Shown: piece by piece, positions 10,701-54,392 of the stretch
How the letters are laid out: each line of letters starts with the position of its first letter
Numbering within the stretch: the stretch's first letter is position 1
Virus record (IMG/VR): IMGVR_UViG_3300042545_001134
Span: 186,001-250,000 of that record
Direction: 5' to 3' (one strand)
DNA: 64,000 nucleotides
Translations under genes and position numbers: made by a program
The notes under the pieces: model-generated
Databases searched by the model: none
What the model was told of the DNA's origin: nothing
What the model saw: the letters and a program-made list of their open reading frames with translations, nothing else

Positions 10701-13700
10701 TCCGTAGGAGTTTCAGTTGGTGTTTCAGTCGGAGTTGCCGTTGGCGTACTAGTCGGCGTTGCCGTTGGTGTCTCAGTAGGGGTTTCAGTCGGAGTTGCCG
10801 TTTGTGTTGGCGTTTCCGTTGGTGTAATAGTCGGCGTTCCTGTTGGTGTTTCCGTAGGAGTTGCTGTTGATGTCTCTGTCGGAGTATTAGTTCCTGTTGG
10901 TGTTTCCGTAGGAGTACTAGTTGGCGTTTCCGTAGGAGTTGCTGTTGGAGTACTAGTTGGAGTTGCTGTTCCTGTTGGGGTAATTGTTGGCGTTTCCGTA
11001 TTAGTCGGTGTACTAGTTGGCGTCTCTGTAGGAGTACTGGTTCCTGTTGGAGTACTAGTTGGCGTTTCTGTGGGTGTCGCAGTGCCTGTAGGAGTTGATG
11101 TTCCCGTTGGTGTTGTAGTTGGTGTATCCGTAGGAGTTGCCGTTGGCGTTTCCGTAGGAGTTGCTGTTGGAGTTGCGGTTGGCGTTTCCGTAGGAGTCTC
11201 TGTTGGTGTACTAGTTCCCGTAGGTGTTATTGTTGGTGTATCAGTAATAGTTGGTGTACTGGTTCCTGTCGGCGTTTCAGTCGGAGTTGTGGTTGGTGTC
11301 TCAGTAGGAGTTGCAGTAGGTGTTGCTGTTCCTGTAGGAGTTACTGTCGGCGTAATTGTTGGCGTTTCCGTTGCAGTAGGAGTACTAGTTGGTGTCTCTG
11401 TCGGAGTTGCTGTTGGTGTTACAGTGCTAGTTGGGGTTACCGTACTAGTTGGTGTATTTGTTACCGTTCCTGTGGGAGTTTCCGTTGGTGTTACAGTAGG
11501 TGTACTAGTTGATGTTGGCGTTGGTGTTGTCTCGTTAAATATAACATCAACATCGATATCAAAATTACAATCTAATATGTTCACATCGATATCAAAATCA
11601 CAATCTATACACTCACCAAAAACCGAAATCTCTAATTCTTCATTTGTTGGTTCAGTTGGACAATGTTCAGGGTCAATATAATATTGACCTAATTTAAAGT
11701 CAAGACCCGGATGAACACTATATGTGTGTTTCATTAGTAATTGTTCATTTGAGTTACCATTGAATACTACTAAGAAACTATCATCACCTAATGGTGTGCC
11801 GTCCTTCTCAACATTTAAATTAAAATATAGGTTTGATTCACAGTAATTTAAATCGACAGCAATCACTTCGATTGGGTACCCATATTGATTAATTAAATAA
11901 TCTCCATGATTATATAACTCTTTTGGGTGGTCACAGCATGGTTCAATGAAATCTATTGGTTTACTTTGTAATTCTTCAGGAAATCTATCATCAAAGTGAT
12001 AGTTACCATTTGTTACATTTCCAAAATTCTCAATAAACTTATTTGTATAAACTCTAAGTTGGGTTGTTGGTAAAACTTCAAATACTTCATAAATTCCATT
12101 ATTGGTTAAACCCGTAATGACACTCTTCTTAACAGAAGCAAGACAATCTTTATCGGTAACTTTTAATTTAACATATTCATATGTGAACGAATAACCATTT
12201 TCAGGTGCGTCTTGGAATTGTTGATTTGATAATTGGTTACAATCTTTGTATTCAGCAGATAAAATGTAATCATCAACAAGAAGGTCACAAACACTTTTTT
12301 TAATTATATCTCCGTTTGAAATAAAAGTTTCAACATCAATACTTGTGGTACCGCTGTTAATTGTTATTCCCGTTGTGACAACTAAAACATCCGTATCACA
12401 TTTTAAACCATAATTGAAATTACTTCTATATTCAACTTTAGGGTGAATTGTATGTCCCGTATAATTGTCACAGAATGTGGCACCTGATATGGATGATATA
12501 CTATTTCCTGAAGTTCCTTGGAAACCTATTAGTTCGAACAATTCAACGTGACTTTTACCACTTGGTAATGGACATGGGTCATGTTCAACTTTGGCCTGTA
12601 AACCTTCTATTCTAAATTTAACTTCTTTATTTGCACCGTCAATAATGTCAAAATCGATAATTTCATTTTGAGTTATTCCAGTTAATTTAAAGACACAGTC
12701 TTCACCCGGTACTCTCTCAATGTATATGTCCGCATTTTGGTTATAACCAGACACACAGTTTGCGTAAATGTAAAATGGCCATTCTCCACTAGGATTTTGA
12801 ACGCCTGATTTGTGTCCAATAACCTCAATGTATAAATCGGAAACTAATAAACAATCCACCGGTTCATTACAATAGTATTGACCATCTCCTCTTACCTCGA
12901 CACTCATTTCAACAACATTCTTTGTTGTCTCATAATCCGCCTCAAATCGATAATCAAAATAATCTTTTACCGAACAATCTCCAATACCGTACTTAATTGA
13001 AGAGAATCTAATCATCTCTTCACCATTTACATCAGTAAACAGTTCATAACTAACCATTGGTACTTCTTCAGTTGTATATGTTTGACCTGTTGCACCTAAG
13101 AATGGGTCATAGTCTTCATATCCCGCAGTATATCTTGTTATAGTGATAACACTAATAAGTTCAGATAATGCACTTAACCATAATTGTTTAATCTTAACAA
13201 TATCAGGTTCTAAATAATCTTTATAATCACAAATAAGAGCCAAATTAACGGCATCATTACTTGTTAAATCCGTACAGTCATCCATTGGGAATGGATTGTA
13301 CAATTGTGCACTATTTGTTGTGTTAGTTGTCCCACTAACAACCACTGTCATTGCTGATGTTAAATCACTAAATGACGGACCACCGTAAACAATACCATCA
13401 ATTTCAATTGTGGGGTAATATGTTACACCAGTTAAATTGATTAACCCCCTGAAGTTACTTTCTTCACCAAGTAAGGTTTCTAAATCTTCCTCAATTGCGG
13501 TTTCGAAATCGGGATATAAATTTTCAACAAACTCCATTGGTTGGCAATCGAATATGTAAGGGTATTTTGGTCTTCCAAATAGATTATTTTCTATTAGATT
13601 ACCACCCGTCCACAATGTTGTTGCCGGAACTAATTGTTCAATTAGTTGGACCCAATATGGTGTGATTTTATCAACAAATTCATTTACATCGATGAAACCA

Positions 13701-15862
13701 TAAGGACTAAATCCAACTTGGGAAATATAATCTCTATAAATGTCTTCGAGAACAATATAATTTTTCTTATATCTAATCGTATTAGAATTTTTTATTGTAC
13801 CATGTATAAATTTATCTACGAATTCGGCAAATGTTACACCTGTTTGTGGTACCAAATTATTATTAGTACCAAAAGATAGATTTAAGTTTCTACCTCTTCT
13901 ATATATGTCATAATCAATACCTTTTGATGGGGAGATATGAACATTAATGTTTTTTCTGTTTAAAATTAATAATGAATCATCTTCAACAGAATGTGTTTTC
14001 TTGTTATCGATTTCTGTTTTAAGACCATAACCCGTATCTAACCCCGGTAACGTTCTAAAAACATCAAAATAATTTTCACCATAAGTGTATGGTTTGTTTT
14101 TTGTTTTGATTGTTTTTGTTAATCCAGTTAGAATTGAGTTTTCAGTATCCAATATCGTTGGTGTACGGTGGTCTAACGTAATGTCGTACCAACCTGAACC
14201 CTTTTCAAAGAATATTTCGTCCGTTTGGTTGAATGCCCTTCTTGGTAATAAGGTATCGGGGTCAACAGGGTAACCATCTCTATCGAAATTTGTTGTTCCC
14301 GTTACTGTTGATGTTTCGTATGTGTAACCTGTAAGGTTAAATGTCGCAGTTGTGTATGTTTTTTCACCTTGGATGACATCGTAGATGTCTTGTTCCAAAT
14401 CAAAACTTCCCGGAATAGATTCAACTCGGTAAATGTACTCGTCAAGTTTTATTAATGGTTCAGGTGCACCTAAGAATTTTAAGAAAAACTCAATACCCGC
14501 TCTTGTACCTTTTGATTTAAAGATAAACGCCAAGTTTACTAAAAGTCTTCTATAGAATTCATATTCGGCATCAATAAGGTTGAATCCTTTGGAAACACCC
14601 CCATAACTTGAGTCTTGTCTTGAATATAAAACATCCTCTAATGATTTTTCATCAAATAAATTAATTGACGATAAACCTAAATTTTGTGATAAGTTTTTTA
14701 ATAATACGTCGGGTAAATTGTTGATACCATCATAACTTACATTTCTCATGTAAGCAATGTTGTCAATGTATTTTTTTACCTTATCGAAACTTTGTCCATA
14801 TAATTGGAAAACACTTTCCGCCTTTTGGTCTTCAGTGTCAAATTCAAATAATTGTGGAGACGCTAAGAATCTAACCATTAAGTTAGATTTGTAGTCATCT
14901 ATTTGGTCTGAGATATCACTCAGATTTTCAACATATGATTCGTAGTCAAGTCCTGCAATTCTGATGTTCCAATTATCTGACGATAACGGCCAAGTATATT
15001 CAACGTTTTGTAATGTGGTTCTTGAACCATCACTGTTATCCATTGGTATTTGGAAACTTGCAGTGTAAATAGGATTTGTTTCTCTATTTAATAACGCCTC
15101 TTCCAAATCATCCAAACCATTGAAGAACTCTTCAACGATACCGTCATTTGGTCTAAGTAAAAAATTAGATGAATATGTTGTAGACCCACTAAGTGGATTA
15201 CCTAAGACAACAAACTTAATTTCGTTTGCCGAATTCGGTTGTGTGTATTCAATGACAGGGTATGTGTTACCACTAAAAACCGCAACGTACTTACTATATG
15301 ATGAGTATAAGTTTCTTATCTCGTTTTCAGTTGTAGGTTTAATTGCACTGTTTGGTTCAATAAGTGAAACATCAAATGGGTTAAAGAGTTTTGCTCTTTC
15401 AACATAGAATGTTGTTCTATTAAGATTAATATCATAAGACGCATTGAATGCGGTATATGAATTACTTCCAATGGGTCCACCACCCTCAACACTTAAACCA
15501 CCGGGAAACTTATTGATAATACGAGTAACCGATACTAAAATTCTGTCTTTTAATGAACCGAATAAAGATTTGTCGGCGTTTTTCTTATTACTTTTAAAAC
15601 GAATTGAGGATTTCTTTTCCTGTGCTGTTTTATTTTGGGTAACAACAGCAGATGTTTCTTCTTTTAAATTATCTAAAGTTAAAAAATCTGAAAATGGGTT
15701 GTTTTTGAAATTTTTTGCATCCTTTGAAGGTATCGTTTTATCAATATCAAAACTGGTATTAGTCAGCGCGGAACTTCCGTTGGTGATTTGTCTACCAACT
15801 AAGTTATCGCTAAATGTTTGCCCACCGTTCGCTGCCTGACTCGGTACCTTTGTTGTTGCCAT
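7751..15862 (-). CDS. giant baseplate wedge protein (gp7 / P2 gpI-like N-terminal part) fused to about 830 aa of Pro-Thr repeats and Cys-rich distal domains
   Basis: 2703 aa. [30 protein letters not shown] matches the KGT..A/GIE motif of gpI/gp7-type wedge proteins; lies downstream of gp25- and gp6-like genes. Confidence 0.6.
8298..8456 (-). repeat. coding Pro-Thr repeat tract 3 (about 53 aa)
   Basis: [17 protein letters not shown] repeats in the 2703-aa ORF. Confidence 0.9.
8900..10237 (-). repeat. coding Pro-Thr repeat tract 2 (about 446 aa; 12- and 18-nt units encoding [14 protein letters not shown])
   Basis: Seen directly; includes near-exact tandem 18-mers gttcctgttggagttgct at about 9051-9122. 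Confidence 0.95.
10541..11530 (-). repeat. coding Pro-Thr repeat tract 1 (about 330 aa)
   Basis: Seen directly in the 2703-aa ORF. Confidence 0.95.
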
Positions 15863-24396: not shown

Positions 24397-24449
24397 TCTA
24401 CTATAAATAGAAATTTATCTATTTTCCAGAAAAATAAGGAAAAATAAAA

Positions 24450-42679: not shown

Positions 42680-42992
42680 AATATAAATTATACAATTCTA
42701 CACTTCTTTTGTAATCTTGTAAAGTCGTAGTTAAAGGAAATGGTACTCTAATTAACGAATTGTTCGGAATTTCAAACTCTAAACTACCGGCCAATGGATT
42801 TGCCATTAAAATAACCCAACCAAAAACGGGTGAATTATAATATTCTTGAGAGATTTTATCCAATCTATCTTTTCCTTTCTTATAGAATGTATACTTGTCG
42901 GTTCCTTTAATCGGAATCTCAATACCCGGAACAATTTTAAATTCACTGTCCTCAATGAAAAACTGATATCTGTTAAAATAATCCCTTGCCAT
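42669..42992 (-). CDS. LysM-like baseplate protein (T4 gp53 / P2 gpX-like)
   Basis: DRLDKISQEYYNSPVFGWVILMANP...IRVP. Confidence 0.8.
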   Translation of the reverse strand: MARDYFNRYQFFIEDSEFKIVPGIEIPIKGTDKYTFYKKGKDRLDKISQEYYNSPVFGWVILMANPLAGSLEFEIPNNSLIRVPFPLTTTLQDYKRSVELYNLYYGE

Positions 42993-45900
42993 TACTTTTT
43001 ATCTTTATTACTTTTGTAGTAGTTTAGTTTGTCTGTCACTTCAACATTATCTGAATGTACTTTTTTAGATTCTTCATTGAATGTCGCATCTGTAGATAAG
43101 TTAGTGGTCGTGAAAGAAAATGTAATTTTTTTACTGTTCTTCCTATCTTTAAATTTTGAAAATTTAAAATCCTTATCTTTAAGTTCCTCAACAAAATCTT
43201 CAATCTTATTTCTAATTTTCTTTCTAATGTTCTCAGGAAATATTGTTTGGTCATTTTCATAAACCTTAACAATCTCATTAACCTTTTCTTGAAGAAATAC
43301 GGTCATAATTCTTTCAAATTCAATTGAACCAATTGTTGGTGTATTAAAATTAATTGTTGATGTTAAATCAATAAACATTTTTGGTGTGTTCTTTTCAATG
43401 TAGTCAATACAACTACTATACTCATTATATAGTAAATCATATGTATAACCCGATAAAACAGCCTCAGTAACATCTTCATCTTTTACCATTGTATCCTTAC
43501 CAAATTTAACAAGGAAGTTAACGTAGTCTAAACTCTTAATCAACGAATCTCTCACAGATTCAAATTCACTGAATGGATTTGTATCGATTAGTTCGTTTAA
43601 TTTATCTTCAACTATTTTAGTAATCAAAGGTTTAAGATATTCGTTTGACTTGGCTAATTTAGGTGGTGTTAAAACTTTATCTAATCCAAACATGAGTGAT
43701 AGGTCGGTATTATCTAATTGTGCAATCATCGCACTTTTAACACCCCTCATTAAGATTGGTAATTCATTGTTTTTCTTATAAAGACCAACTAATGATAGTG
43801 TTTTTCCCGGTGATGTACTAGTGGTTGTGTAAACATCATATTGTTTAATTGTTCTATACGTGTCAGTAAACAATAATGTACCAATGTCTTGACCATATCT
43901 TTTAATCATTTTGTTATAGGTAGTTTCGTACTTTTTAAAATAATTGTCAGTATTATCAAATACTGGTTTAAGTAATGGGGTGAAGTCCATCGTTGATGAT
44001 GGGGTAATAAATGTACCAATCCATTTTCCTTCACTAATTTCATTAGTGTTTTGAGTTTCAGGGGTTTCTTTTTGTTTTGGTAAATCACTTAATAATTTCT
44101 CCAAGAAATCTTTTGTAAATTCTTTTGCGTCCACACCACCGATTGTCTCATTTGTTGGTATTGACCTTTCATCGTACATTTCAGTATTAGCAAAGAAATT
44201 TGATGAAAGAGCGTTTTGTAATCTCTCAACAGGTCTTGACAATCCCTGTCCTCCAATAAATGCAATTTGACATGTAATATTGGCAATCATTGGTTGTACA
44301 CCAATACCTTCAGGGTTTAAATCCCATGGTGAATCATCATACGTGATGTTAACATCACGAATAATAATTTTAGAATGGTAAAAATCACCAATTCTAAGAA
44401 CACAAACAGGTGGTGGACCAAATGAAGTATTTCTTGCATTTAAATCTGCATCATCCGCAATTCCCTTAATAGGTATTGTGTCACCCGGTCTTATACATTG
44501 TAACATAAAGGTCAAACGAGAGTTCAATCCTTCAGGAGTTGTTGAGTGGAAACCTGGATGGAAATATTTTAATTTTTCTTTTAATGATTTGAACGCCACT
44601 GGAGAATCCTCTTCAAGTTTTTTGAAATAGAAACACTCTGAAAGAGTTTTCATGATGATTCTCTTCATTGGGTCTATCGCAGGTTTCTTAGTTGGTGGAT
44701 ATAAAGTAGTTTCACCATCCGGTTCAATTCTCGTAACGATTGTTGGGGGAGGTGTTGGTTTTGGTTTTTCAGGTTCAATATGGTATTTAACCTCCGCTGT
44801 TGATTGTCTACAGAAAAATGCAACTGGTGCGTGGATTTTTAAACTCTTAACAGTAATAAATTCCTTTCCTCTACATTGACTATCGGGTGACGGTCCTGTA
44901 AAATTTTCACCGTAGTTTGCCGAGTCAATAACAACTGAACCCGTATTATCCGTCCATCCAAAATCACTTAATTTATATTCTTTTTTAATAACTATTGGTT
45001 TACCTTTCGAAATGATAACTTTATCATTTTCAGATAAGTTTTTATTCTCAGCAATACCAATACTTTTAACCCATTTAAATTCTTTAGGAACAGTTCCATC
45101 TTTTGAAATATTTTTAAAGAATTCTTTTATAATACTTGAACTTCTTCTAAGTGCCAAGTTTTCATTATATAGTTCAGATGCAACTGATGAACAAGACGAT
45201 TCAACTGTTAAGTAAATTCTTTGTACAGTACCCCCACTAATCATTTCTTTAAGTGTTGCAGTTCCACCAGTAAACTTCTCATATTCTTTTTTTGCCGTTT
45301 CAAAATAACCATCAAGTAAATTTGTTTGATAAAGAACGGCTGCATTATCAATTGTAGTTCCCGTTTTACCAAAAACATATTCTCTCTCTTTTAAAACTTG
45401 TGCGGTTTGTGTTATACCAGTAATACTTCTTAATGCGGTATCAAGTGCCGCGGTATGTCCTGTTTTTTGTATGTAGAACGGTTCAAACAATTGACCGTAT
45501 GGTGTGTCAACTTCTACGGATTGAAAACGTGGACCCGGAATGTCGTTATCATATTTAAGAACACATTTAAAACCTTCATTTTTACCATTGTTAGCGTTTG
45601 CCGAACCACCACTTTGGTCCGTATTAACAACGGGTTCTATAATGGTTTTGTATTTCTTAATTACTTCAGGGTCTTTACCTTTTTCTAAGAACATCTTTAT
45701 TAAAGTGATGTCATCAGAATCCAAATAAGTGTATCTTCTAATAAGTGAATAGAAATCCAATTCCTCACATCCCGCAAAAAATGCGTTGATGTAATTTTCG
45801 GACTCTTCGTCACTCATATTTTTAAAGTGTTCTCTAACTAATAGGTTTAAGATACTAGGGTGGTCGACAACCACTTTGAATGATAATGTTCCCGTTCTTG

Positions 45901-47800
45901 ATGTATCTTGGTACGTATATATTGGTTCAGGTCGACCTAAGAATGTGTTATCACTCCATCTTGCTGAGTTCTGCTCACTGATTTTTAAGTCATATGGTGG
46001 AAACCACATAACTCTACCTCCGTTGTTACCTCTTTCACAGTAAGGTAAATCATTATATGTGAATCCAGGGGTGTTTGATGTTTTCCATGCCAAGTTCTCA
46101 ATTGAGAACATATATTTTTTTGCATAAAATCCATCTCCGGGAGGTCCTTTTTTAATGTTTGTTGAAACCCCTTCAAAATTTCTATCACCATCTGACATAG
46201 GTGCAATGTTCAAGTTCCATGGGGTTGACATCACACTATCATCGAATTTACGGATATTACCCGTTCTCTTCATGGTATCTGAATAGTTAAAGTAAGACCT
46301 ATCTTTTGTCCACACTCTACAATATTCTATACCGGTGTTTTCTTTTGTGTATTTGTCAACATATTGAATTGCGGAACCTCTTGATAACATTGTTTCACCT
46401 TCTCTGAACACTCTACTTGTTTGGTCAATAACATTACCAACGTGAGTACGAGACGCCATGCCGTCATTCGGCATAGAATCAAGGAGTTCCTGTGTTTTAC
46501 CTAAAATCGAATCTTCTCTAAAACCATATTTTGTTGATAGAGAATCAACATGTGATGTTTGTTCTCTTGAATATGTTGTTTCCGACCTTTCACCAAAGAA
46601 ACCGGTACGTGGAATTTTTGTTTCATTTGGTGATAAATTATATTCTTTTGAATTACGACTAATCCATGTTAGTTTAGTACTTAGTGTACCTCCTTCACTT
46701 ATATTTCTTTGTCTTTCAAATAAAGATGTCTGAACAGGGTCAAACATCATACCCATATAGTAACTACCTTTTACCATATTGTTATTTGCGTCAGACATTG
46801 TCATCTTAACATCTTCACTTCTATCATCACCAATATATGCAACACCTTTTGGTGCCTCTAACCCTAAAAGAGATTTAACTCCTTGAGCAAATTGACTAAT
46901 GTTGTTAAAAAGTTTTGAAGACTGTTGTGACCTTGCAGTAGTCGTGTAGTTTGGTGCGTATTTCGAATATGATAAGTTGTCAAACAAAGTTTGTTTTTGA
47001 CCATCACCCATATATTCAATCATCAAATCAGAAGGTTTTCTTGAAACCTTTGGTCTTCTTTGAATTCCAATTAATGAACCTAACGCACCTGTAATATCTT
47101 GTAGAATTGCCCCACCTTCAGTTCTTGGTGTTGGTCTATTTTCAATTGGGTTTTGTGGGTTAGATAAATAATCACCCGGTATTTCACTAAACGGGAATTC
47201 GACACCCGCAACGGTTTGTAGAAAATCTATCCCCTTACCTAATAATGTCTTGGCGACCGTAATTTTATAATTCTTTTCAATTAACGGTTCTCTACCTGTA
47301 ACGATATTGATTGCCGTTGCTGTGTTTCCATTTATTGCATCCGCAATTCTAACTCTACCTAATGTGGCCGCAGTTAAATTTTGTGTAATCCTCGCAAAAA
47401 CGGGACCGTCTCTATTTTCACGTATGTTTAATGCCGCGAATTTCATTAACTGCGATTCATTATCGTAGTTACTGTTAGACATAATACCAAATAAACTACT
47501 TATATCTCCTCTTGTAAAATAGGGGTATAAATTTAAATTGGCACTTCTTGGTATTGTATTAATATTTTCAGTTACAAAGTAACTTACAGGTTTAAAAATG
47601 TTTGTATTTTTAATCTGTAATAAATCATTTGCACGGTTTGTGTCGACCGCACCTGGGTCAACATTGGCTAAATTACTTAGAGTCTGAACACTATAGTTTG
47701 CCGCAGTAAATGTTTGGGGACCAAATGGACGTTGTAACGTCTTTGATATTAAGAAGTCCCTGAATGTCGATGTACTACTAAAATCTAAATAACTTGGCAT
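42992..47800 (-). CDS. large tail-tube initiator/baseplate protein (gp48/gp54-like) with OmpA-like insertion
   Basis: 1602 aa. WSDNTFLGRPEPIYTYQDTSRTGTLSF and PPVCVLRIGDFY...ITYD..PWD tube-initiator motifs; YNENLALRR OmpA-like motif; sits between the tape measure and LysM genes. Confidence 0.6.
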   Translation of the reverse strand: MPSYLDFSSTSTFRDFLISKTLQRPFGPQTFTAANYSVQTLSNLANVDPGAVDTNRANDLLQIKNTNIFKPVSYFVTENINTIPRSANLNLYPYFTRGDISSLFGIMSNSNYDNESQLMKFAALNIRENRDGPVFARITQNLTAATLGRVRIADAINGNTATAINIVTGREPLIEKNYKITVAKTLLGKGIDFLQTVAGVEFPFSEIPGDYLSNPQNPIENRPTPRTEGGAILQDITGALGSLIGIQRRPKVSRKPSDLMIEYMGDGQKQTLFDNLSYSKYAPNYTTTARSQQSSKLFNNISQFAQGVKSLLGLEAPKGVAYIGDDRSEDVKMTMSDANNNMVKGSYYMGMMFDPVQTSLFERQRNISEGGTLSTKLTWISRNSKEYNLSPNETKIPRTGFFGERSETTYSREQTSHVDSLSTKYGFREDSILGKTQELLDSMPNDGMASRTHVGNVIDQTSRVFREGETMLSRGSAIQYVDKYTKENTGIEYCRVWTKDRSYFNYSDTMKRTGNIRKFDDSVMSTPWNLNIAPMSDGDRNFEGVSTNIKKGPPGDGFYAKKYMFSIENLAWKTSNTPGFTYNDLPYCERGNNGGRVMWFPPYDLKISEQNSARWSDNTFLGRPEPIYTYQDTSRTGTLSFKVVVDHPSILNLLVREHFKNMSDEESENYINAFFAGCEELDFYSLIRRYTYLDSDDITLIKMFLEKGKDPEVIKKYKTIIEPVVNTDQSGGSANANNGKNEGFKCVLKYDNDIPGPRFQSVEVDTPYGQLFEPFYIQKTGHTAALDTALRSITGITQTAQVLKEREYVFGKTGTTIDNAAVLYQTNLLDGYFETAKKEYEKFTGGTATLKEMISGGTVQRIYLTVESSCSSVASELYNENLALRRSSSIIKEFFKNISKDGTVPKEFKWVKSIGIAENKNLSENDKVIISKGKPIVIKKEYKLSDFGWTDNTGSVVIDSANYGENFTGPSPDSQCRGKEFITVKSLKIHAPVAFFCRQSTAEVKYHIEPEKPKPTPPPTIVTRIEPDGETTLYPPTKKPAIDPMKRIIMKTLSECFYFKKLEEDSPVAFKSLKEKLKYFHPGFHSTTPEGLNSRLTFMLQCIRPGDTIPIKGIADDADLNARNTSFGPPPVCVLRIGDFYHSKIIIRDVNITYDDSPWDLNPEGIGVQPMIANITCQIAFIGGQGLSRPVERLQNALSSNFFANTEMYDERSIPTNETIGGVDAKEFTKDFLEKLLSDLPKQKETPETQNTNEISEGKWIGTFITPSSTMDFTPLLKPVFDNTDNYFKKYETTYNKMIKRYGQDIGTLLFTDTYRTIKQYDVYTTTSTSPGKTLSLVGLYKKNNELPILMRGVKSAMIAQLDNTDLSLMFGLDKVLTPPKLAKSNEYLKPLITKIVEDKLNELIDTNPFSEFESVRDSLIKSLDYVNFLVKFGKDTMVKDEDVTEAVLSGYTYDLLYNEYSSCIDYIEKNTPKMFIDLTSTINFNTPTIGSIEFERIMTVFLQEKVNEIVKVYENDQTIFPENIRKKIRNKIEDFVEELKDKDFKFSKFKDRKNSKKITFSFTTTNLSTDATFNEESKKVHSDNVEVTDKLNYYKSNKDKK

Positions 47801-47840
47801 TTATTGTTTTACTATAAATAGAGATTTACTTATTTTATGT

Positions 47841-49757
47841 TTATGATTGACTAGTATAATCTCTTGGACTAGTTCCATTTAAAAATTCGTCAATTGCTTC
47901 GGGTCTTCTAACAAGATATCTTGACCATTCATCCATAATCGTATCACTCTTAATATTAAGTGTAACTTCTGTTTTATTGGATTGTGGTTCAGTTGTTGTT
48001 GCCGGTGTATTTGTTGTCGGTGTTGAATTGTTAACAGGTACTGATTGTTGTGGTGTTGATTTAGAACCATACATTCCAACGTCAGTTGCCATTTTAATTG
48101 TTTTGTCCACCACGTCAATATTTGCGTTTTTTGCACCAGTTTTTGAACTCTCGTTCATTTCTTTCGCAGTTTTTGAAAGGTAATCTGAGACACCTTTTGT
48201 TTCCGCATCAATGGCAGCACCTGCAATTCTCGCTTCACGAGCAAATCTAACTCTCAAAATACCTAAAATTTCAGCGACATTCAACGCCATATTTTGAGTT
48301 TGAGTAAATTGTTCTTTTGCGATTTGTTCAGTTGACATTTCTTCAAATGCCTTTTGATTTGCCAATAATGCATCCGCTTCAACTTTGGTTAGAGTATCTA
48401 AAGCAATTCTCTGAGCTCCACCAAATTCTTTTGATATAGAGGAAACGTCAATAACCATTTTACCACCTTCCATTCTTGAGATGTTGGTTAAGAATTCTTT
48501 CTCTTTTTCATCTAACGCAAATCCTTTTGACATAAGAGCAGTTGATGCGGACTGTCTTTCGGATGCCTTAATAGAAGTTTTACTTAATTCTTCCATTGTC
48601 ATTCCGAATTGCTCAGCCATCGCTTTTGCCTTTCTTAAATTAACTCCTGTTATTTCAAAACGACCTTGTTCTTGGTTGTAAGTTGCTAATGAACCTGCAG
48701 CGCCTATTATTGCATCCTGTATTCCTCCAACATCATTTGTTGCGTTATACATCATTTTAAGTGGGTCGTTAAAATCACCAATTGCACCACCTATTGCTTG
48801 TAAATTTGCCGTTAAATCAATTGCTTGGTCTGGGTCAAATAATTTTTCAGCCAAATCAAAGGTATTCTGCATGTTAAATTTGAATTGAACTGATTGTTGA
48901 ACCATTTTGGTTAAACCTTGAACCCCATTTTGAAAACCGTATTGGTTTATTTTAGATAAATTCGTATTTACCTCAGATACAACCTTTCTAGAGTTTAAAC
49001 CTAAAACCATAGATGATTTACCCGCCTCGTTAATTTGTTCTAACGCATCTCCCGCTCCTATACCAATTTCATTGAAGTTGTTTAGATATTGTGGAAGGTC
49101 CTGTAAGTTACCAATGAACGCTCTTGATGTAACCGCCCCCTTTTCAAAAACATCAGCACCAACCATCGCCATATTACCCATGTCTTGTGACACTTGCATG
49201 GTAGTTGACGCTAATTCATCGAAACTATATCCCATACCTGCAACCGCGGGCATGGCTTCAAAAATATTATCCCTATAATCTCTCGATAGTTGGCCCGCCA
49301 TTCCTAATTTGGCGTTTACTTCGTTTCTTAATTTAACTTCGTTAGTAAGAACGTCCGTTATTTGTTTACCGGCAAATTCTAAGGATTTAAAAATTGAGTC
49401 ACCGAGTAATGAGGTTATACCTCCACCCAGACCACCTCTAATTGTTTTTACAATATCAGTAACCTCAAGTTTTTCATTATCAGCCAATGACGCTGAAGCG
49501 GGTAGACTTTGAGAACCAGCTAATCTTTCAACAAAATCGCCACCTGTTTTTGATGCGGCTTTACCAAAACTATATTTATCGCCACCACTATTAGAACCAG
49601 TACCCCGACCAATAAAACCTTGGGCAAATTGAGACTGCTCGCTACTTGACAATGGATTACCTCCATTTAATTTTTTAGCATATGCCTCCGATTGAGTATC
49701 AGAATGATTTAACTTTCTTGAGTCTTCACCTACTTTTTTCCAATCAATTGTTGCCAT
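47841..49757 (-). CDS. tape measure protein
   Basis: 638 aa, helical and Ala/Gly/Gln-rich; canonical position after tube and chaperone, before tube initiator. Confidence 0.7.
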   Translation of the reverse strand: MATIDWKKVGEDSRKLNHSDTQSEAYAKKLNGGNPLSSSEQSQFAQGFIGRGTGSNSGGDKYSFGKAASKTGGDFVERLAGSQSLPASASLADNEKLEVTDIVKTIRGGLGGGITSLLGDSIFKSLEFAGKQITDVLTNEVKLRNEVNAKLGMAGQLSRDYRDNIFEAMPAVAGMGYSFDELASTTMQVSQDMGNMAMVGADVFEKGAVTSRAFIGNLQDLPQYLNNFNEIGIGAGDALEQINEAGKSSMVLGLNSRKVVSEVNTNLSKINQYGFQNGVQGLTKMVQQSVQFKFNMQNTFDLAEKLFDPDQAIDLTANLQAIGGAIGDFNDPLKMMYNATNDVGGIQDAIIGAAGSLATYNQEQGRFEITGVNLRKAKAMAEQFGMTMEELSKTSIKASERQSASTALMSKGFALDEKEKEFLTNISRMEGGKMVIDVSSISKEFGGAQRIALDTLTKVEADALLANQKAFEEMSTEQIAKEQFTQTQNMALNVAEILGILRVRFAREARIAGAAIDAETKGVSDYLSKTAKEMNESSKTGAKNANIDVVDKTIKMATDVGMYGSKSTPQQSVPVNNSTPTTNTPATTTEPQSNKTEVTLNIKSDTIMDEWSRYLVRRPEAIDEFLNGTSPRDYTSQS

Positions 49758-49770
49758 ACCTATAAATAGA

Positions 49771-49923
49771 TTAATTTGTATTTTCTATATCCATAAGATA
49801 CTTTATATAGTATCTTCGAACATAGATAGGCATACCCATAATATCCCCATAAGAGAACCCTCTTTTGACTAAAAATAAAATTTCGTCTAACTGACCTTTC
49901 TTATAATCCGTAGAAAGGGCGAA
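49771..49923 (-). CDS. frameshift-accessed C-terminal extension of the tail assembly chaperone (gp51 / gpT-like)
   Basis: +1 frame after GGG TTT TTT C reads FALSTDYKKGQLDEILFLVKRGFSYGDIMGMPIYVRRYYIKYLMDIENTN*; fills the gap up to the tape-measure promoter. Confidence 0.7.
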   Translation of the reverse strand, partial: FALSTDYKKGQLDEILFLVKRGFSYGDIMGMPIYVRRYYIKYLMDIENTN

Positions 49924-50650
49924 AAAACCCAACCCCGAACCCAATTTCAATTTGGGTAATATCTCCAGACGGGGTATTAATTGTTTGGGTTAAATTCACA
50001 CCCGGTTTATTTTCTTCTACAAACTTTCTAAAATCTTGAGAGTCTTTGATTGGTAATCTATCAACAAAATTGTGAGTATTCATTAAATCCTTATTTCCCT
50101 CAACGGATTTAATCATCATCTCAAGTTTTTTTGTGATGATAGGTGCAACCCCATTACCATTCCAACTTGTTTCAATATCTTTTAATTCTTTTTCTTGTTT
50201 TGAGGTCAAAAATTTAAAAGTAATATTAACCTTACTTTTTTCCATATGATATGGATATTCACCATTTGAATCCGCAACTAACGTAAAGTCTTTATATTTT
50301 AATTCACTTAAATCGATATCAACAGTAAACTCTTTTTCTGTTTTTGGGTCGATTGTTGTGTATTTGTATATTGAACCGAACGCGGTATTTCGTAAGAAAA
50401 TTAATATCGCCTGTTTATCTTCTTCACATAATTCATCAGTATTGAAGTCTTTATCTAAAACTTTTCTTTTGAGTAGTTCTTCGAGCATTTTATTACTTGC
50501 CAGTAAATTTGCCGATGATAGGATATTTTCATCAGATGCGGTTAAATACGCGATTCTTAATGATTTCTTACCACTTGGGTAATGAATACCTCTTGAAGGT
50601 AATTCTACAACATCATATGATATTGTTGGGTCGATTCTAAATTCTTCCAT
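49901..50650 (-). CDS. tail assembly chaperone / T4 gp26-like baseplate hub assembly protein
   Basis: VELPSRG..Y, LTASDENIL and DKQAILIFLRNTAFG; lies between tube and tape measure genes. Confidence 0.75.
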   Translation of the reverse strand: MEEFRIDPTISYDVVELPSRGIHYPSGKKSLRIAYLTASDENILSSANLLASNKMLEELLKRKVLDKDFNTDELCEEDKQAILIFLRNTAFGSIYKYTTIDPKTEKEFTVDIDLSELKYKDFTLVADSNGEYPYHMEKSKVNITFKFLTSKQEKELKDIETSWNGNGVAPIITKKLEMMIKSVEGNKDLMNTHNFVDRLPIKDSQDFRKFVEENKPGVNLTQTINTPSGDITQIEIGFGVGFFRPFYGL

Positions 50651-50759: not shown

Positions 50760-51248
50760 TTAGTAAACTTGGATACATCTATCCATACGTAAAGACGCAG
50801 TGATAGTTGCGATATCGTCTCTTGAGTAATCAAGTTCATTGAAGTTCAAGTCAGTCAAGAATGTACCTTGAAGAATCCATTTTTCAACCACAACACCCGT
50901 TGGGTCTAACATCTCCAATTCGATGTCTTTCTTATAACCCGCAGCGTAACCCATACGACCCGTAACAGACTCAGCGTGAAGACGGAACCATTCCATCAAT
51001 GCCTGTGACGCAGAAGGACCAATAGGGTCTTTAAACGTTACTCTTAATTCGTTCCACTCAAAACGTCCCGCAACATAAGTTGAGGTATTGATGAACGGAA
51101 TCGCAACTGAATTGATTTTTGCACTTGGTCTAGCCGCTGATGACACATACCATTCGTTGATACCCAATGAAGAAGGGAATCTAAGTATGAATCGGTTAAC
51201 TCTTTTCGGTTCGTAAGGAACCGGCATTTTCATTAATAAATCTGCCAT
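50760..51248 (-). CDS. tail tube protein (T4 gp19-like)
   Basis: EPKRVNRF, YVAGRFEWNEL.VTF.DP, LMEW and GYKKDIELEMLDPTG.VVEKW; follows the sheath gene. Confidence 0.9.
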   Translation of the reverse strand: MADLLMKMPVPYEPKRVNRFILRFPSSLGINEWYVSSAARPSAKINSVAIPFINTSTYVAGRFEWNELRVTFKDPIGPSASQALMEWFRLHAESVTGRMGYAAGYKKDIELEMLDPTGVVVEKWILQGTFLTDLNFNELDYSRDDIATITASLRMDRCIQVY

Positions 51249-51554: not shown

Positions 51555-54392
51555 TTAGATATTATCAAATGATGCTCCTGTTGGGGTAATTATGAACTCA
51601 ACATCGATAAATTCAAGTGAACGAGTTGGTTTTACATAGATTTTACCTCTAAGTGTGTTTGCATCAATGTCCTCAGGGTCATTAGATACAGTTACACGGA
51701 ACTCATATAAACCTCTTTCTCTCTTAATTGCTTCAAGAATTGGGTTTACTAATCTCAAGAATTCATTACGAACTTGTTCGTCATTTTGTTCGAACAACAA
51801 TCTTACAGCAACTGCTGAAATAAGTTTTCTTGCTCTTAACAATAATCTTCTTACGTTAATTCTATCCAATGCAGATTCTCTTACTTGAAGGGTTTTGTTA
51901 CCCCAAATAATGGTACCTGTATCAGAGAAAGTAGCGATTGGGTTGATTCTTGCCTTATATAAATCATCTCTTTCGTCAAGAGTTAATTTTTTAACCGCTT
52001 TGATTGCCTTAACCAAACCTCTTGAATAACCCGCTACTGCGAACCAAGGGAATGATACGTTATCTGTTAACGCAATGTTTCTTACAACCTCACCTGTAGG
52101 TGGAATGTATAATTGAGTTGCGTTGTCTTGGTCTCTAACTTGAATCCAAGGCCAGTAGGTTGCTGAATAGTTAGTATCCAATGCCACACCGTCCAATGCG
52201 TCAATTACTTCGTCCGCAGTTGATACGTTTGGAGATGCAATAACATAAAGTGAATCCGCTCTATCGTTTTCCATAATATCGATTGCCTGTGTAGTTAATG
52301 AACTATGGTCGTAGAAGTTAATACCCGGAGTTGCGAAGATGTTGATATCTACCGCTTCAGGGTTTGCGAATGTGTTAATACCTTGTAGGTATGCATAATA
52401 ATCAGAGTTTCCAACAGTTGTACTGAATACACCACCGTTAGTTGTGTGACCACTTACATATGTTGATTTACCAAAGATATATCCGTCTCCGTAAGTTTTA
52501 GTTTGACGATAAATGTCAAAACCATCGAAACCACCACCAACTGCAAATGTGAATTTACGGTAAGTTGTTGCTGTTAATGGATTATCAACACCTGTTTGTC
52601 CTTCTAAATCGTAAGGAGTTGTTGTAAATGTTGTACCTGTAATAGTAGATGCGTTTACTGATAAGTGGAAACCACTTGTTGAACCCGCAGCCGCCGCTCC
52701 TTTATATTTGAATAAGTCTTTGTCAAGTCCAACTTGTGAAGATAGACCTAAAGTTACTTTTCTAATTTTATCACCGGCAGATGTAACTGGAGAACCATCA
52801 ACATTGTAACTGATAACATCACCTGCGGTGTAGTATTCCGTTTTATATAATACTGAACCCAAAACAGAACCTGAGAAGTTTGTGTTTGCTACAAATCCTT
52901 TAAATCCTGCTGGAAACGCATCAGTTGGGTGGTTTTCAGCCATATTCAACATGATGTATTTTGAACGTAATTCGTATTCACCGTCAGAAGTACCAACTTT
53001 CTTAGCCACATAACCTGGTAGGTCTGGATTCATTGAACATCTTGTAAATTTCTCAAGTGCAACTAAATTATCGTCAGTATCGTTAAAGTCACGAACAATT
53101 AAATCAAATTCACCTGTTTCGATATCGATATTGATGATAGACATTTTGATTTGTGCGTTCGCTGCGTCACCATCTGAAATTGTAATAGTCTCAAATAGGT
53201 CAGAAACCTCACCACCACGTACTTCAGATACTACCATTGGAGAAATTGGGGTATCCCACTCTCTAACGAAGTTTGTACCTTCAGAAACATAAAGTTCAGT
53301 TAAACTAATACCTCTTACTAAACCTTGTTCGTATGCGGTCTTTAAATAATTTGGATATGTTTCGTAAACATACACCGGAATGTCCGATTTAGGTTTGTCA
53401 TATACATCAGTACCTAACACTTTAGTTACATACTTAGATGATGATAAATCCATTGAACAAGTGAATGATTTTACACCACTTGTAGAACCCGTTACATTAA
53501 CTGTAAACTCGGCGAAAGGATTTGTTGACAAATCAGAACCTGAAATGTTGAAACTTGTGTTACCTGTAACTTCAAGTAACAATGTTTGTCCTGAATAAGA
53601 ACCTCTTGAACGGAACGCCGCAACAACTTCACCGTCATTGGTTAATGTTGCATCGTACTCATATCTTGTTACTGAGAATAGGTTAGTTGAACCATTCCAT
53701 ACGAATAAATAAGAATAAACCTCATTTGTACCGTTATTGAATGTGTTGTACCAATTTTTATTCCAAGATGAATTTACATTTAGGTCACCTGTAAGTGGTG
53801 AAATCATTTCTTTAGTTGGGTCTTGAGCTGCAACATCTGTTGCATCCGCCGCACCAATAACGAACCATGTACCTGTACCACCTGTGAAACCACTAAATTC
53901 TGTGTAGATGTAATCTGTAATAGATGTACCATCATATGCAGTTTTACCCGAAAGTTCAGCGTATACTGTACTTCCTGTGTAAGTTGCTAATGGTGTTGGG
54001 TCCATTGTGATACCTGTTGTGGTACCTGTTGTCATACTCCCCAAAACAAAACCACCAAGGGTTTGAATTGCGAAAGTTTTCACTGGTTTATATCCTGTTA
54101 ACCCTAGGATTCTTGTTACGAATAATTGATTCGATTCTTCAAGGTATGCTTTAGCAACATAAGGTAACTCATATTTTGGGTTACCCGCCCCGTCTTTTGC
54201 TGGTGATGAACCTCCAAAGTACAATTTAAACTCATCATAATCTTTAACTAAGATTGGTTCGAAGGCTGGACCCTTTAAGGTTTCACCTACCAAACCTAAT
54301 GTAGTAACACCTACACTTTGTGCGACGAATGTTAAATCTTTTTCTGATGTATAAACACCTGGAGATACAAATACTCTATTTGAATTTGCCAT
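51555..54392 (-). CDS. contractile tail sheath protein (T4 gp18-like)
   Basis: VSPGVYTSEKD, GETLKGPAFEP, YSATYWPW, PWFAVAGYSRG, INPIATF, IIWGNKTLQ..SALDRINVRRL and KPTRSLEFI. Confidence 0.96.
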   Translation of the reverse strand: MANSNRVFVSPGVYTSEKDLTFVAQSVGVTTLGLVGETLKGPAFEPILVKDYDEFKLYFGGSSPAKDGAGNPKYELPYVAKAYLEESNQLFVTRILGLTGYKPVKTFAIQTLGGFVLGSMTTGTTTGITMDPTPLATYTGSTVYAELSGKTAYDGTSITDYIYTEFSGFTGGTGTWFVIGAADATDVAAQDPTKEMISPLTGDLNVNSSWNKNWYNTFNNGTNEVYSYLFVWNGSTNLFSVTRYEYDATLTNDGEVVAAFRSRGSYSGQTLLLEVTGNTSFNISGSDLSTNPFAEFTVNVTGSTSGVKSFTCSMDLSSSKYVTKVLGTDVYDKPKSDIPVYVYETYPNYLKTAYEQGLVRGISLTELYVSEGTNFVREWDTPISPMVVSEVRGGEVSDLFETITISDGDAANAQIKMSIINIDIETGEFDLIVRDFNDTDDNLVALEKFTRCSMNPDLPGYVAKKVGTSDGEYELRSKYIMLNMAENHPTDAFPAGFKGFVANTNFSGSVLGSVLYKTEYYTAGDVISYNVDGSPVTSAGDKIRKVTLGLSSQVGLDKDLFKYKGAAAAGSTSGFHLSVNASTITGTTFTTTPYDLEGQTGVDNPLTATTYRKFTFAVGGGFDGFDIYRQTKTYGDGYIFGKSTYVSGHTTNGGVFSTTVGNSDYYAYLQGINTFANPEAVDINIFATPGINFYDHSSLTTQAIDIMENDRADSLYVIASPNVSTADEVIDALDGVALDTNYSATYWPWIQVRDQDNATQLYIPPTGEVVRNIALTDNVSFPWFAVAGYSRGLVKAIKAVKKLTLDERDDLYKARINPIATFSDTGTIIWGNKTLQVRESALDRINVRRLLLRARKLISAVAVRLLFEQNDEQVRNEFLRLVNPILEAIKRERGLYEFRVTVSNDPEDIDANTLRGKIYVKPTRSLEFIDVEFIITPTGASFDNI

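Follow-up and report, generated by a model that had tools for sequence, protein, structure and literature searches.

A likely +1 frameshift in the gp26/gp51-type tail assembly chaperone gene of a jumbo lake phage

The chaperone locus and its reading frames

The window analysed here, a stretch of DNA of 64,000 nucleotides, is part of the 311-kb genome of a jumbo lake phage, and all genes discussed lie on its minus strand. A T4 gp19-like tail tube gene (50760-51248, 162 aa) is located directly upstream of the chaperone gene; its product matches the tail tube family phrog_4542 (E 1.5e-23), and its match to PF06841 remains under the Pfam cut-off. The 0-frame ORF of the chaperone gene (49901-50650) encodes a short form of 249 aa that matches PF12322 and phrog_150, is the equivalent of T4 gp26 and ends in ..GFGVGFFRPFYGL, with the stop codon at 49901-49903. 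It is followed by a gene for a presumed tape measure protein of 638 aa (47841-49757), named by position only, as neither a Pfam or PHROG match nor BLAST similarity to the tape measure protein of Flavobacterium phage immuto was found. The order sheath, tube, chaperone and 638-aa gene is common to the phages immuto, HSE3 and SP-15, in which the gene at this last position is annotated as tape measure. A tube homologue is located upstream of the chaperone gene in 127 related loci. A distant blastn search of the locus against GenBank phages gave no match.

Near the end of the 0-frame ORF, the codons from 49928-49930 onwards read GGG TTT TTT CGC CCT TTC TAC GGA TTA TAA, with the T6 run at 49922-49927 and CGC at 49919-49921, and the stop lies 6 codons past GGG TTT TTT CGC. 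The shift site, GGG TTT TTT CGC C (49918-49930), rests on a census of sites in 52 distinct sequences. The putative slip would move the P-site codon from UUU (49922-49924) to UUC (49921-49923), the 0-frame A-site codon being CGC (49919-49921) and the first +1 codon GCC (49918-49920). An invariant GGGG (49933-49936, within TTC GGG GTT) has its 3' end 8 nt ahead of the P-site codon; it is a possible stimulator, its function is not shown.

The second frame is the +1 frame, as the first codon bases go from coordinates of 1 mod 3 to 0 mod 3 in the downstream direction on the minus strand. Its extension (49771-49920, 49 codons and a stop) corresponds to the C-terminal domain of T4 gp51 and is the counterpart of the lambda T segment. 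Read from the re-paired TTC it gives F-ALSTDYKKG...GFSYGDIMGMPIYVRRYYIKYLMDIENTN, with 49 sense codons after the Phe and the stop at 49771-49773, so that the whole recoded gene (49771-50650), translated with one four-base step at F243, would encode a long form of 292 aa. The first ATG of the +1 frame lies inside ..DIMGM.., and a +1-frame TTG is present at 49950 in the window phage.

The motif CTATTTATAG (49760-49769) begins 1 nt past the +1 stop and ends 2 nt ahead of the next ATG (49757). Three exact minus-strand copies are present in the window (24401, 47812 and 49760) against 0.21 expected, and two of the three sit 2-11 nt upstream of ATGs, at 49757 and 47800.

The preliminary description of this DNA, made from sequence alone, had named GGG-TTT-TTT-C as the site of the frame change, with the +1 frame open, the -1 frame closing after about 13 codons and no ATG ahead of the conserved +1 part. 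All of this held, the -1 frame being closed after 13 codons. In detail, the continuation given as 50 codons consists of 49 sense codons after the Phe and then the stop, and the late motif begins 1 nt past the +1 stop, where 2 nt had been given.

Conservation of the +1 arrangement

The window clade is represented by 52 distinct sequences with identities of 61-100%, and every one of them has its extension in the +1 frame. In the clade of phage Mel-JY01, all 78 loci match the extension HMM in the +1 frame and none in another frame. At least 600 IMG/VR matches were obtained with the Mel-JY01-clade query, and more than 700 IMG/VR loci were matched overall. The same offset is present in the metagenomic record LR756508 and in the cultured phages Mel-JY01, immuto, HSE3, RM378, SP-15 and GXN1; cultured phages with a +1 extension span Flavobacterium, Microcystis, Rhodothermus, Bacillus and Streptococcus, Mel-JY01 being a phage of Microcystis and HSE3 and SP-15 phages of Bacillus. 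A frameshift is annotated in none of the six cultured-phage records. Single-protein locus scans with SP-15 and RM378 as queries returned only self-matches.

The entropy at the third codon position averages 1.02 (sd 0.19) over the gene and drops to 0.34 over codons 241-249. The overlap is thus under constraint in both frames and is more than a chance arrangement. The extension carries the conserved motif FF.L...Y...G[FY]....[ML]P...R, and the FF junction is the exact point from which the +1 peptide is conserved, ahead of every start that could be used. An ATG, GTG or TTG upstream in the +1 frame is missing altogether in 10 of 52 window-clade and 26 of 71 Mel-clade sequences. A stop in the +1 frame precedes the site by 2 codons in 10 sequences of the window clade and 15 of the Mel clade, and the 0-frame stop follows 3-7 codons downstream; the frame change must therefore fall within at most 9 codons. 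The programmed frameshift in a tail assembly chaperone gene that had been proposed is thus supported, and strongly so by the comparative data; its protein product is not shown.

Features of the shift site

In the alignment of homologous loci the exact T6 is not conserved; a +1-prone site and the frame offset are always kept. The sites found across the relatives are UUU_C, UUU_U, CUU_U and probably CCC_A, one of them being present in every case. Re-pairing of the P-site tRNA at +1 is possible on UUU to UUC in the window phage and on UUU_U, CUU_U and CCC_A in relatives. Many members have T-runs of 6-8, with U6 in the window phage and U7 in the Mel-JY01 clade. Several relatives keep the +1 extension with an interrupted run, namely GAA TTC TTT CTC (loci L065-67), TTC TTT CGT (HSE3, GXN1 and L174), TTT CTT TGG (immuto) and AAC TTT CTA (LR756508).

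The 0-frame A-site codon CGC is rare: it is used 5 times among the 19,612 codons of the window, and at 0.41 per 1000 it ranks as the second-rarest sense codon of the genome. Among the long ORFs of the window, an in-frame TTT-CGN is found only at the shift site, and TTT-CGN pairs are under-represented, with 9 observed against 18.7 expected. The hungry-codon part of the model is nevertheless weaker than the re-pairing part, because the A-site codon differs among relatives (UGG, CAC, CUC, CUA and UAC) and because the phage carries its own tRNA-Arg(ACG), which reads CGC.

The GGGG shows zero entropy at the Gly third position in the 52 sequences, although GGG makes up only 8% of Gly codons. It occurs at identical spacing in immuto and is absent in Mel-JY01. 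A conserved downstream stimulatory RNA structure was not found (RNAalifold energy of about 0, z-scores of -0.5 to 0.1).

Relationship to T4 gp26 and gp51

The match of the 249-aa body to PF12322 (T4_baseplate, the T4 gp26/gp51 family) reaches 42 bits at a cut-off of 24.5 (E 1.1e-10) and shows that the window product is a member of this family. The E-value for phrog_150 improves from 1.4e-9 with the short form to 3e-12 with the fused form, the score rising from 38.8 to 47.5 bits (+8.7) when the +1 extension is added. T4 gp26 spans positions 14-235 of the PHROG 150 profile and gp51 positions 13-280; the 0-frame product of the window spans 13-225 and the fused product 13-269. The gp51-type C-terminal domain (about positions 236-280) is thus reached in the window only through the +1 frame. 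The assignment of PF28602 to this domain comes from the precomputed annotation of gp51 homologues, without a direct scan of the extension.

In a profile-profile comparison, the alignment of the fused family with the T4 gp51 family extended to the C-terminus of each (Prob 70%, E 4e-5). T4 gp26 ends in ..EFFELL, which is homologous to the end of the window short form. The link to T4 gp26/gp51 that had been suggested therefore held, on the PHROG 150 spans and on this alignment. The signal of the extension by itself is small: aligned alone to the gp51 family with hhalign it gave only P 0.004, but was placed correctly, and Pfam and PHROG scans of the extension alone gave no match. Comparisons with single T4 sequences by hhalign resulted in low probabilities (17-18%). 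In BFVD, 61 structural matches were obtained at E<=1e-3, and those that carry a name are for the most part given as 'baseplate hub subunit/assembly protein'.

In T4, gp26 (208 aa) and gp51 (249 aa) belong to the same Pfam and PHROG family, and gp51 carries the homologous C-terminal domain (at residues of about 197-249) in frame. The T4 arrangement differs in that two separate, divergently transcribed paralogous genes are present, which are not adjacent to tube gene 19 and involve no frameshift; within gene 26 there is a further in-frame start, 26'. A T4 review lists both proteins as chaperones of hub assembly and gives gp51 as missing from the particle (PMC3004832). For T4 only, they are described as needed for hub and tail assembly, yet not as stoichiometric virion components, and their roles in hub assembly have been unclear for decades (PMC3004832).

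Predicted fold and comparison with lambda gpG/gpGT

The AF2 model of the 249-aa short form has a pLDDT of 87.2. In a fold search against 48,161 chains, the top matches were the three tail assembly chaperones of solved structure, with residues of about 125-220 as the matching part: 3fgx (Z 5.6, 90 aligned), 2ob9, the HK97 chaperone (Z 5.0), and 3klu, YqbN (Z 4.9-5.0), all of which are called tail assembly chaperones (PMC9603447). The same top three were obtained for the full and the domain models, and the next, unrelated chain has a Z of 2.9. Hence, the short form is predicted to have a tail assembly chaperone fold, with the reservation that the Z scores are modest; Foldseek against the PDB gave no match at E<=0.001. 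The identity as a chaperone is supported by the gene position, by these closest solved folds and by the listing of gp26 and gp51 in the T4 review. In chaperone pairs of the lambda G/GT type the body is expected to bind the tape measure and the extension the tube protein; a complex prediction of the extension with the tube protein gave no answer (score 0.00) and is no evidence either way.

The lambda gpG/gpGT pair arises from a frameshift that is conserved among long-tailed phages (Xu, Hendrix and Duda 2004, summarised in PMC5009743). The window gene resembles it in its position between the major tail or tube gene and the tape measure gene, in the inferred, not observed, formation of a short and a C-terminally extended product with a common N-terminus, and in a shift located a few codons ahead of the 0-frame stop. 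The proposed link to the lambda G/GT scheme is supported by this gene position and by the closest solved folds. It differs from lambda in that the inferred slip is +1 at UUU_C, not -1 at an X_XXY_YYZ heptamer, and in that the protein has no sequence similarity to any Pfam tail-chaperone family. The window protein is also larger, with an extra N-terminal domain of ~120 aa, and its binding partners are not shown.

Other recoded relatives and known +1 sites

In the Kyanoviridae (T4-like cyanophages) and the Ackermannviridae, an extension is found in the -1 frame at U_UUU_UUY. Their gp26-like genes are followed by a small ORF named 'baseplate hub assembly catalyst'. These phages share with the window a homologous body and a homologous extension starting at FF; they differ in the frame and in that the genes are not beside the tube gene. 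From the FF junction on, the -1 extensions can be aligned with the C-terminus of gp51 (Prob 94.7%, E 5.6e-8), and they also align with the window extension family (Prob 54%, E 1.3e-4). As they match both, the window extension is tied transitively to the gp51 domain.

A +1 shift had been called atypical for tail chaperones, which held, but there is a precedent. In the haloarchaeal myovirus HSTV-2 the shift in the tail chaperone is 'very likely +1' (PMC5009743). HSTV-2 has the order sheath, tube, chaperone and tape measure, a joined CDS is annotated, and the +1 offset is located at TCC TTT CGC, with UUU_CGC as in the window. Its chaperone, with a body of 177 aa, falls into another PHROG (12163), and sequence homology between it and the window chaperone is undetectable (hhalign Prob 0.1%).

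In E. coli, CUU_UGA of prfB, UUU followed by a pyrimidine and CCC_N are +1-prone sites. The prfB site CUU_UGA is a known +1 site (PMC10885494). In these sites, as proposed for the window, the P-site codon can re-pair after a forward step of one base, and the 0-frame codon that follows is decoded slowly; CUU_U of immuto corresponds to the re-pairing in prfB. In contrast to the known sites, the A-site codon of the window is a rare sense codon and not a stop, and a Shine-Dalgarno sequence 3 nt upstream is missing; the window has GGGG 8 nt upstream, with an unknown role.

Proposed mechanism

Based on comparative sequence data, it is likely that one gene gives rise to a short and a long tail assembly chaperone by a +1 slip at UUU-C. 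The frame structure, its conservation, the homologies and the fold resemblance are shown; that ribosomes shift at the site, that the slip is a +1 slip in the P site and how efficient it may be are inferred. There is no mass-spectrometry or ribosome-profiling evidence behind the two products, and the sole RNA-library contig stops short of the site.

Most ribosomes would stay in frame through GGG UUU UUU CGC and stop 6 codons on, releasing the 249-aa short form, the equivalent of gp26 and lambda gpG. A fraction would pause with peptidyl-tRNA-Phe on the second UUU and the A site awaiting the very rare CGC. The tRNA-Phe (anticodon GAA) may then re-pair one base forward on UUC, and GCC would be read next. 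Translation of 49 further codons would yield the 292-aa long form, the equivalent of gp51 and lambda gpGT, with the junction ..GVGFF-ALSTDY.... By analogy with lambda and T4, the shared body may chaperone the tape measure or the hub, while the extension would provide a second contact that is needed in small amounts.

Alternative explanations

A -2 ribosomal slip on U6, with the peptidyl-tRNA-Phe moving back two bases, would lead to the same frame with one extra Phe (..GFFF-ALS..). The preliminary description had left the choice between +1 and -2 open, and both U6 in the window phage and U7 in the Mel-JY01 clade permit re-pairing of UUU on UUU at -2. However, the relatives with interrupted T-runs (L065-67, HSE3, GXN1, L174, immuto and LR756508) can re-pair at +1 and not at -2, which fits only a +1 P-site slip, and a single mechanism for all lineages is more economical. 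We therefore regard a -2 slip as very improbable.

Transcriptional slippage, in which the RNA polymerase drops one U in some mRNAs so that the long form is encoded in a single frame, would be compatible with the T homopolymers of 6-8 in many members, and the intact T6 of the window would allow the loss of one U. Against this, several lineages have retained the +1 extension with a run that is broken into pieces of at most T3. A T6 is short for efficient transcriptional slippage. No indel variants were seen in contigs, though contigs cannot reveal rare variants, and there is no RNA over the site. This explanation, too, has little left in its favour.

It is also hard to sustain that no fusion is made and the small ORF is translated alone, by internal initiation or termination-reinitiation, as a free gp51-like peptide of 5-6 kDa. 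The TTG at 49950 could in principle start a separate protein of 59 aa, GenBank records annotate the extension as a separate small gene, and coupling would be possible in Ralstonia phage RSP15, where the 0-frame stop and an ATG overlap as TGATG. However, start codons are missing or not conserved, including the upstream TTG codons at which independent initiation had been considered, and the peptide conservation begins at FF, upstream of usable starts. The +1 frame of 25 sequences is open for no more than 2 codons ahead of the site, and T4 carries the homologous domain as a covalent part of gp51.

A sequencing or assembly indel or a decaying pseudogene, suggested by the homopolymer run at the frame change, is all but excluded, since contigs from independent lake samples (2016, 2020 and 2024) are identical across the T6 site without indels, and the offset is kept under purifying selection in over 120 distinct related sequences as well as in seven isolate or long metagenomic records.

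Discussion

The +1 slip at UUU-C remains the preferred reading for the window phage and its relatives. A bolder reading, towards which the balance tips only slightly when all its parts are taken jointly, is that the gp26/gp51 family corresponds, within the T4 superfamily, to lambda gpG/gpGT and derives from an ancestral single gene frameshifted at conserved Phe-Phe codons. The frameshift would have survived as +1 in myophages of Bacteroidota, Cyanobacteria and Firmicutes, a very large group that had not been annotated before and to which this jumbo phage belongs, and as -1 in T4-like cyanophages and Ackermannviridae, while T4 would have resolved the gene into the paralogues 26 and 51. In the literature searched, no prior description of a frameshift in gp26/gp51-type genes and no paper pairing 'baseplate hub assembly catalyst' with 'frameshift' was found; as most subscription journals are outside that literature, a prior description is not excluded.

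The tail-chaperone frameshift is among the most conserved recoding events of phages, and T4 has been cited as an exception to it (PMC5009743). If the bolder reading is true, the long-noted 'except T4' exception would be removed, T4 gp26 and gp51 would correspond to the short and the long form, respectively, and the enigmatic 'catalytic' gp51 would gain a concrete role. The small 'hypothetical' or 'baseplate hub assembly catalyst' ORFs of the matched loci, the cyanophages and the Ackermannviridae are probably the 3' part of a recoded gene, to be annotated as joined. The family would further represent a natural series of +1 (UUU_C, UUU_U, CUU_U and CCC_A) and -1 (U_UUU_UUY) sites at one homologous position in phages with hosts of several phyla, and this series may be useful for studying the determinants of frameshift direction and efficiency.

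Gene order and the overlapping reading frames

On the minus strand, the tail sheath gene (51555-54392) and the tail tube gene (50760-51248) are followed by a 249-aa ORF (49901-50650), a short ORF overlapping it (49771-49950), a 638-aa gene (47841-49757) and a 1602-aa gene (42992-47800). The product of the 249-aa ORF, the short form, matches Pfam PF12322 (T4_baseplate, E 1.1e-10) and positions 13-225 of the 282 in PHROG 150 ('baseplate hub'). Its gene is located between the tube and presumed tape measure genes, the usual chaperone position, and a tube homologue was found upstream of the chaperone gene in 127 related loci. The 638-aa gene is taken as the tape measure gene by position only; the 1602-aa protein encoded just downstream of it had no match in Pfam or PHROG. 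The host contig of the window is a single one of 310,691 bp with 34.7% GC, so the label 'jumbo myophage' in the preliminary description held.

The short form ends in ..GFGVGFFRPFYGL followed by a stop codon, and the site on the coding strand reads GGG TTT TTT CGC CCT TTC TAC GGA TTA TAA. The preliminary description had noted a +1-frame continuation at the Phe run, which is confirmed: the overlapping ORF lies in the +1 frame and adds 49 codons before it closes at 49771-49773. In the -1 frame a stop is reached after 13 codons. Conceptual translation through the site with a single four-base step gives a fused long form of 292 aa (P0001). With the frames fused, the PHROG 150 match ended at profile position 269 instead of 225 and scored 47.5 rather than 38.8 bits. 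In family members encoded by a single ORF, the counterpart of the +1 peptide is therefore the C-terminal part.

The motif CTATTTATAG occurs on the minus strand in three exact copies (24401-24410, 47812-47821 and 49760-49769; 0.21 expected). In two cases the motif lies 2-11 nt ahead of a start ATG, that of the presumed tape measure gene in one and that of the 1602-aa gene in the other. A promoter or a translation-initiation signal of the phage is a possible function. Also on this strand, a 2703-aa protein (7751-15862) contains very long Thr-Pro repeat tracts (TPTxTPTGT...), shared by the neighbouring 341-aa protein (6683-7708), and these tracts account for the GC-rich, strongly skewed 8-12 kb stretch (GC 0.446 vs about 0.34).

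Conservation of the frame offset

A word-based protein search returned 1867 relatives of the fused chaperone. The best 120 are nearly all 249 aa long and cover 83% of the fused query, hence they end at the same point as the short form. Among 107 confirmed IMG/VR loci of the window clade, 80 were fetched and 74 were readable, representing 52 distinct DNA sequences (61-100% identity); all 74 have a common 0-frame end and a common +1 continuation. The site is G(A/G)N TTT TTT CG(C/T/A) CCT in 50 sequences and GAA TTC TTT CTC CCT in 2. Third-position entropy is 0.34 over codons 241-249, compared with a gene mean of 1.02 (sd 0.19), consistent with the drop that double-frame reading predicts. Changes at the variable base of CGN leave the frame-0 residue as Arg and alter the +1 residue (A, V or D), so frame 0 is also under selection there.

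Short contigs belonging to other, diverged phages in three lake metagenomes can be aligned at >=90% only over ~55 nt around the shift site (window 49895-49955). The local depth peak that results points independently to extreme conservation of the nucleotide sequence there. One 168-nt contig in a freshwater metatranscriptome library matches the 5' part of the chaperone gene at full identity (window 50442-50609); it stops short of the shift site and could also stem from DNA carry-over.

For a second clade, the relatives of Microcystis phage Mel-JY01, at least 600 IMG/VR matches were obtained. The extension HMM matched in the +1 frame in 78/78 readable loci and never in another frame. The site is TTT TTT TGG C in 65 distinct sequences, with CTT TTT TGG, TTT TTT TAC and TTT TTT TTC as further variants. 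All seven isolate or long metagenomic records examined have the +1 offset: Mel-JY01 (TTT TTT TGG C), Flavobacterium phage immuto (TTT CTT TGG C), the metagenomic LR756508 (AAC TTT CTA T), Bacillus phage HSE3 and Streptococcus phage GXN1 (both TTC TTT CGT C), Bacillus phage SP-15 (TTT TTT CAC G) and Rhodothermus phage RM378 (TTT TTT TGG A). GenBank records of the isolates treat the downstream piece as a small 'hypothetical protein' of its own in five cases and leave it unannotated in GXN1. Three HSE3-like IMG/VR contigs (L172, L175, L176) carry GAA TTA TT(T/C) AAT CCC AGT in place of the Phe-Phe site and keep the +1 extension; with CCC_A as the only re-pairing codon left, the slippery site has probably shifted two codons downstream. 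Thus, of the TTTTTTC run and frame offset whose conservation had been proposed as a check, the offset is kept in all of these sequences, while the run itself is broken in some relatives.

In an alignment of eight family members (A1), cysteine pairs precede the FF motif in the Firmicute-phage members, LR756508 and T4 gp26 (CxxC; CxxxC in LR756508), most carriers having a second pair near columns 135-140. A zinc ribbon is possible, inferred only from the sequences; those cysteines have disappeared from the window protein and from its counterparts in Mel-JY01 and immuto.

Mechanism of the frame change

The contexts UUU_C, UUU_U, CUU_U and CCC_A are classically prone to +1 shifting. The CUU_U case is represented by prfB (PMC10885494). 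The likely common denominator of all sites, inferred from sequence comparison without protein evidence, is a +1 slip in which the P-site peptidyl-tRNA would move from UUU to UUC or UUU, from CUU to UUU, or from CCC to CCA.

Other elements may contribute. CGC, the 0-frame codon after the slip codon, is used 5 times among the window's 19,612 codons; genome-wide, at 0.41 per 1000, only one sense codon is rarer. TTT-CGN pairs are also rarer than expected (9 observed vs 18.7 expected). Both would fit a hungry-codon pause, a possibility that is less general because the relatives' A-site codons are UGG, CAC, CUC, CUA or UAC. The phage encodes tRNA-Phe(GAA) and tRNA-Arg(ACG); the latter, which reads the shift-site CGC, could conceivably tune shifting in infection. 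The genome holds 25 tRNA genes, tRNA-Arg(UCU) and tRNA-Trp among them, and a tmRNA, outside the window (contig positions 149-605, 6451-6857 and 303528-310632). A GGGG (TTC GGG GTT; 49933-49936, minus strand), ending 8 nt before the P-site codon, is invariant in 52/52 clade sequences and includes the rare Gly codon GGG (8%). It recurs at equal spacing in immuto and is absent from Mel-JY01. It may be a stimulatory element, e.g. through anti-Shine-Dalgarno pairing, but such a role has not been shown. A search for conserved RNA structure downstream of the shift site found none.

Two rivals cannot be excluded for the window phage from sequence alone, a -2 slip on the T-run and transcriptional slippage with loss of a U from the mRNA. 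Both require a homopolymer and are disfavoured by the relatives, as the interrupted sites TTC TTT C, TTT CTT T, AAC TTT C and CCC A retain the +1 extension and permit only forward P-site re-pairing. Independent initiation of the extension is unlikely. The TTG at 49950 leaves it formally possible in the window phage, but 10/52 and 26/71 distinct sequences of the window and Mel-JY01 clades have no ATG, GTG or TTG upstream of the site in the +1 frame, which in 25 sequences is open just 2 codons ahead of it, and conservation of the +1 peptide begins at the FF junction. A sequencing error is excluded, since lake samples taken independently in 2016 and 2020 yielded contigs that do not differ across the site, and since the offset is conserved. 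The frameshift interpretation of the preliminary description is therefore supported, with +1 favoured over its alternative of -2, and its rival of a start at an upstream in-frame TTG is disfavoured.

Relation to T4 gp26 and gp51

Both T4 proteins belong to PF12322 and match PHROG 150, gp26 (208 aa) at positions 14-235 and gp51 (249 aa) at 13-280. T4 gp26 (..CPECGK..GLKEFFELL, stop) ends at the same place and Phe-Phe motif as the 0-frame products ..EFFRPKFR (HSE3) and ..GFFRPFYGL (window), whereas gp51 continues in frame beyond that point (..DVFKLLVNPDE..). Against a profile of 92 gp51 homologues, the fused-protein profile aligned window residues 53-292 with gp51 43-249, reaching both C-termini (Prob 70%, E 4e-5). 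T4 gp26' (5803-6090 of the T4 record), an internal in-frame start product comprising the last 95 residues of gp26, roughly equals the chaperone-like domain of the window protein.

A homologous extension in the -1 frame was found at the end of the gp26-like gene in T4-like cyanophages and relatives (Melnitz, S-SSM4, S-CAM1) and in the Ackermannviridae RSP15 and dinky. These extensions follow AGT TTT TTC, AGT TTT TTT or GAT TTT TTT, with the classical heptamer U_UUU_UUY in 4/5 phages, the exception being dinky (ATT TTC ATT). They aligned with the C-terminus of gp51, starting at the junction (Prob 94.7%, E 5.6e-8), and with the +1 extension family of the window (Prob 54%, E 1.3e-4). On these alignments, the evidence leans towards one ancestral gene with three expression modes: +1 frameshift, -1 frameshift and two paralogous genes. 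What the Melnitz and RSP15 records annotate is a truncated small ORF named 'baseplate hub assembly (catalyst)'. For RSP15, translational coupling is an alternative, since the stop shares bases with an ATG (TGATG).

Fold, precedent and significance

AlphaFold modelled the short form with good confidence (pLDDT 87.2, pTM 0.80). Foldseek found no match to this model in the PDB. When 48,161 chains were searched exhaustively with VIA-align, the three best were 3fgx (Z 5.6), 2ob9 (tail assembly chaperone of HK97; Z 5.0) and 3klu (YqbN; Z 4.9), aligned with residues about 125-220. Modelled separately, residues 120-249 again placed these three on top (Z 5.6, 5.0 and 5.0; 81-90 residues aligned), followed by 5ir0 (Z 4.5), 3pes (Z 3.6) and unrelated chains at Z 2.9 or less. 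Exactly these three top structures have been described as phage tail assembly chaperones (PMC9603447). The Z scores are modest and the fold is a prediction, but a chance match is unlikely given the coverage, the rank of these entries and their distance from the background. In T4, gp26 and gp51 are hub assembly chaperones, and gp51 is required yet absent from the particle (PMC3004832), by analogy the behaviour expected of a pair of the lambda G/GT type. A complex prediction of the extension with the tube protein gave no answer, neither for nor against binding.

According to a review by Atkins et al. (PMC5009743), conservation of the G-T frameshift is wide among long-tailed phages, 'except T4'. 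For HSTV-2, a haloarchaeal myovirus, the same review rates the chaperone frameshift 'very likely +1'; the GenBank record of this virus gives the chaperone as a joined CDS, and the site, TCC TTT CGC, shares UUU_CGC with the window. A +1 chaperone frameshift in a myovirus is therefore atypical, as the preliminary description said, but has precedent. No sequence similarity between the HSTV-2 chaperone and the gp26/gp51 family was found. In the literature searched, whose incomplete coverage allows only absence of evidence, we found no paper that describes frameshifting in genes of the gp26/gp51 type or that identifies gp26/gp51 as T4's equivalent of G/GT. Although protein evidence is lacking, the locus very probably represents a tail-chaperone frameshift of a +1, gp26/gp51 type, widespread and currently unannotated, and such a frameshift offers a testable explanation of the T4 exception.
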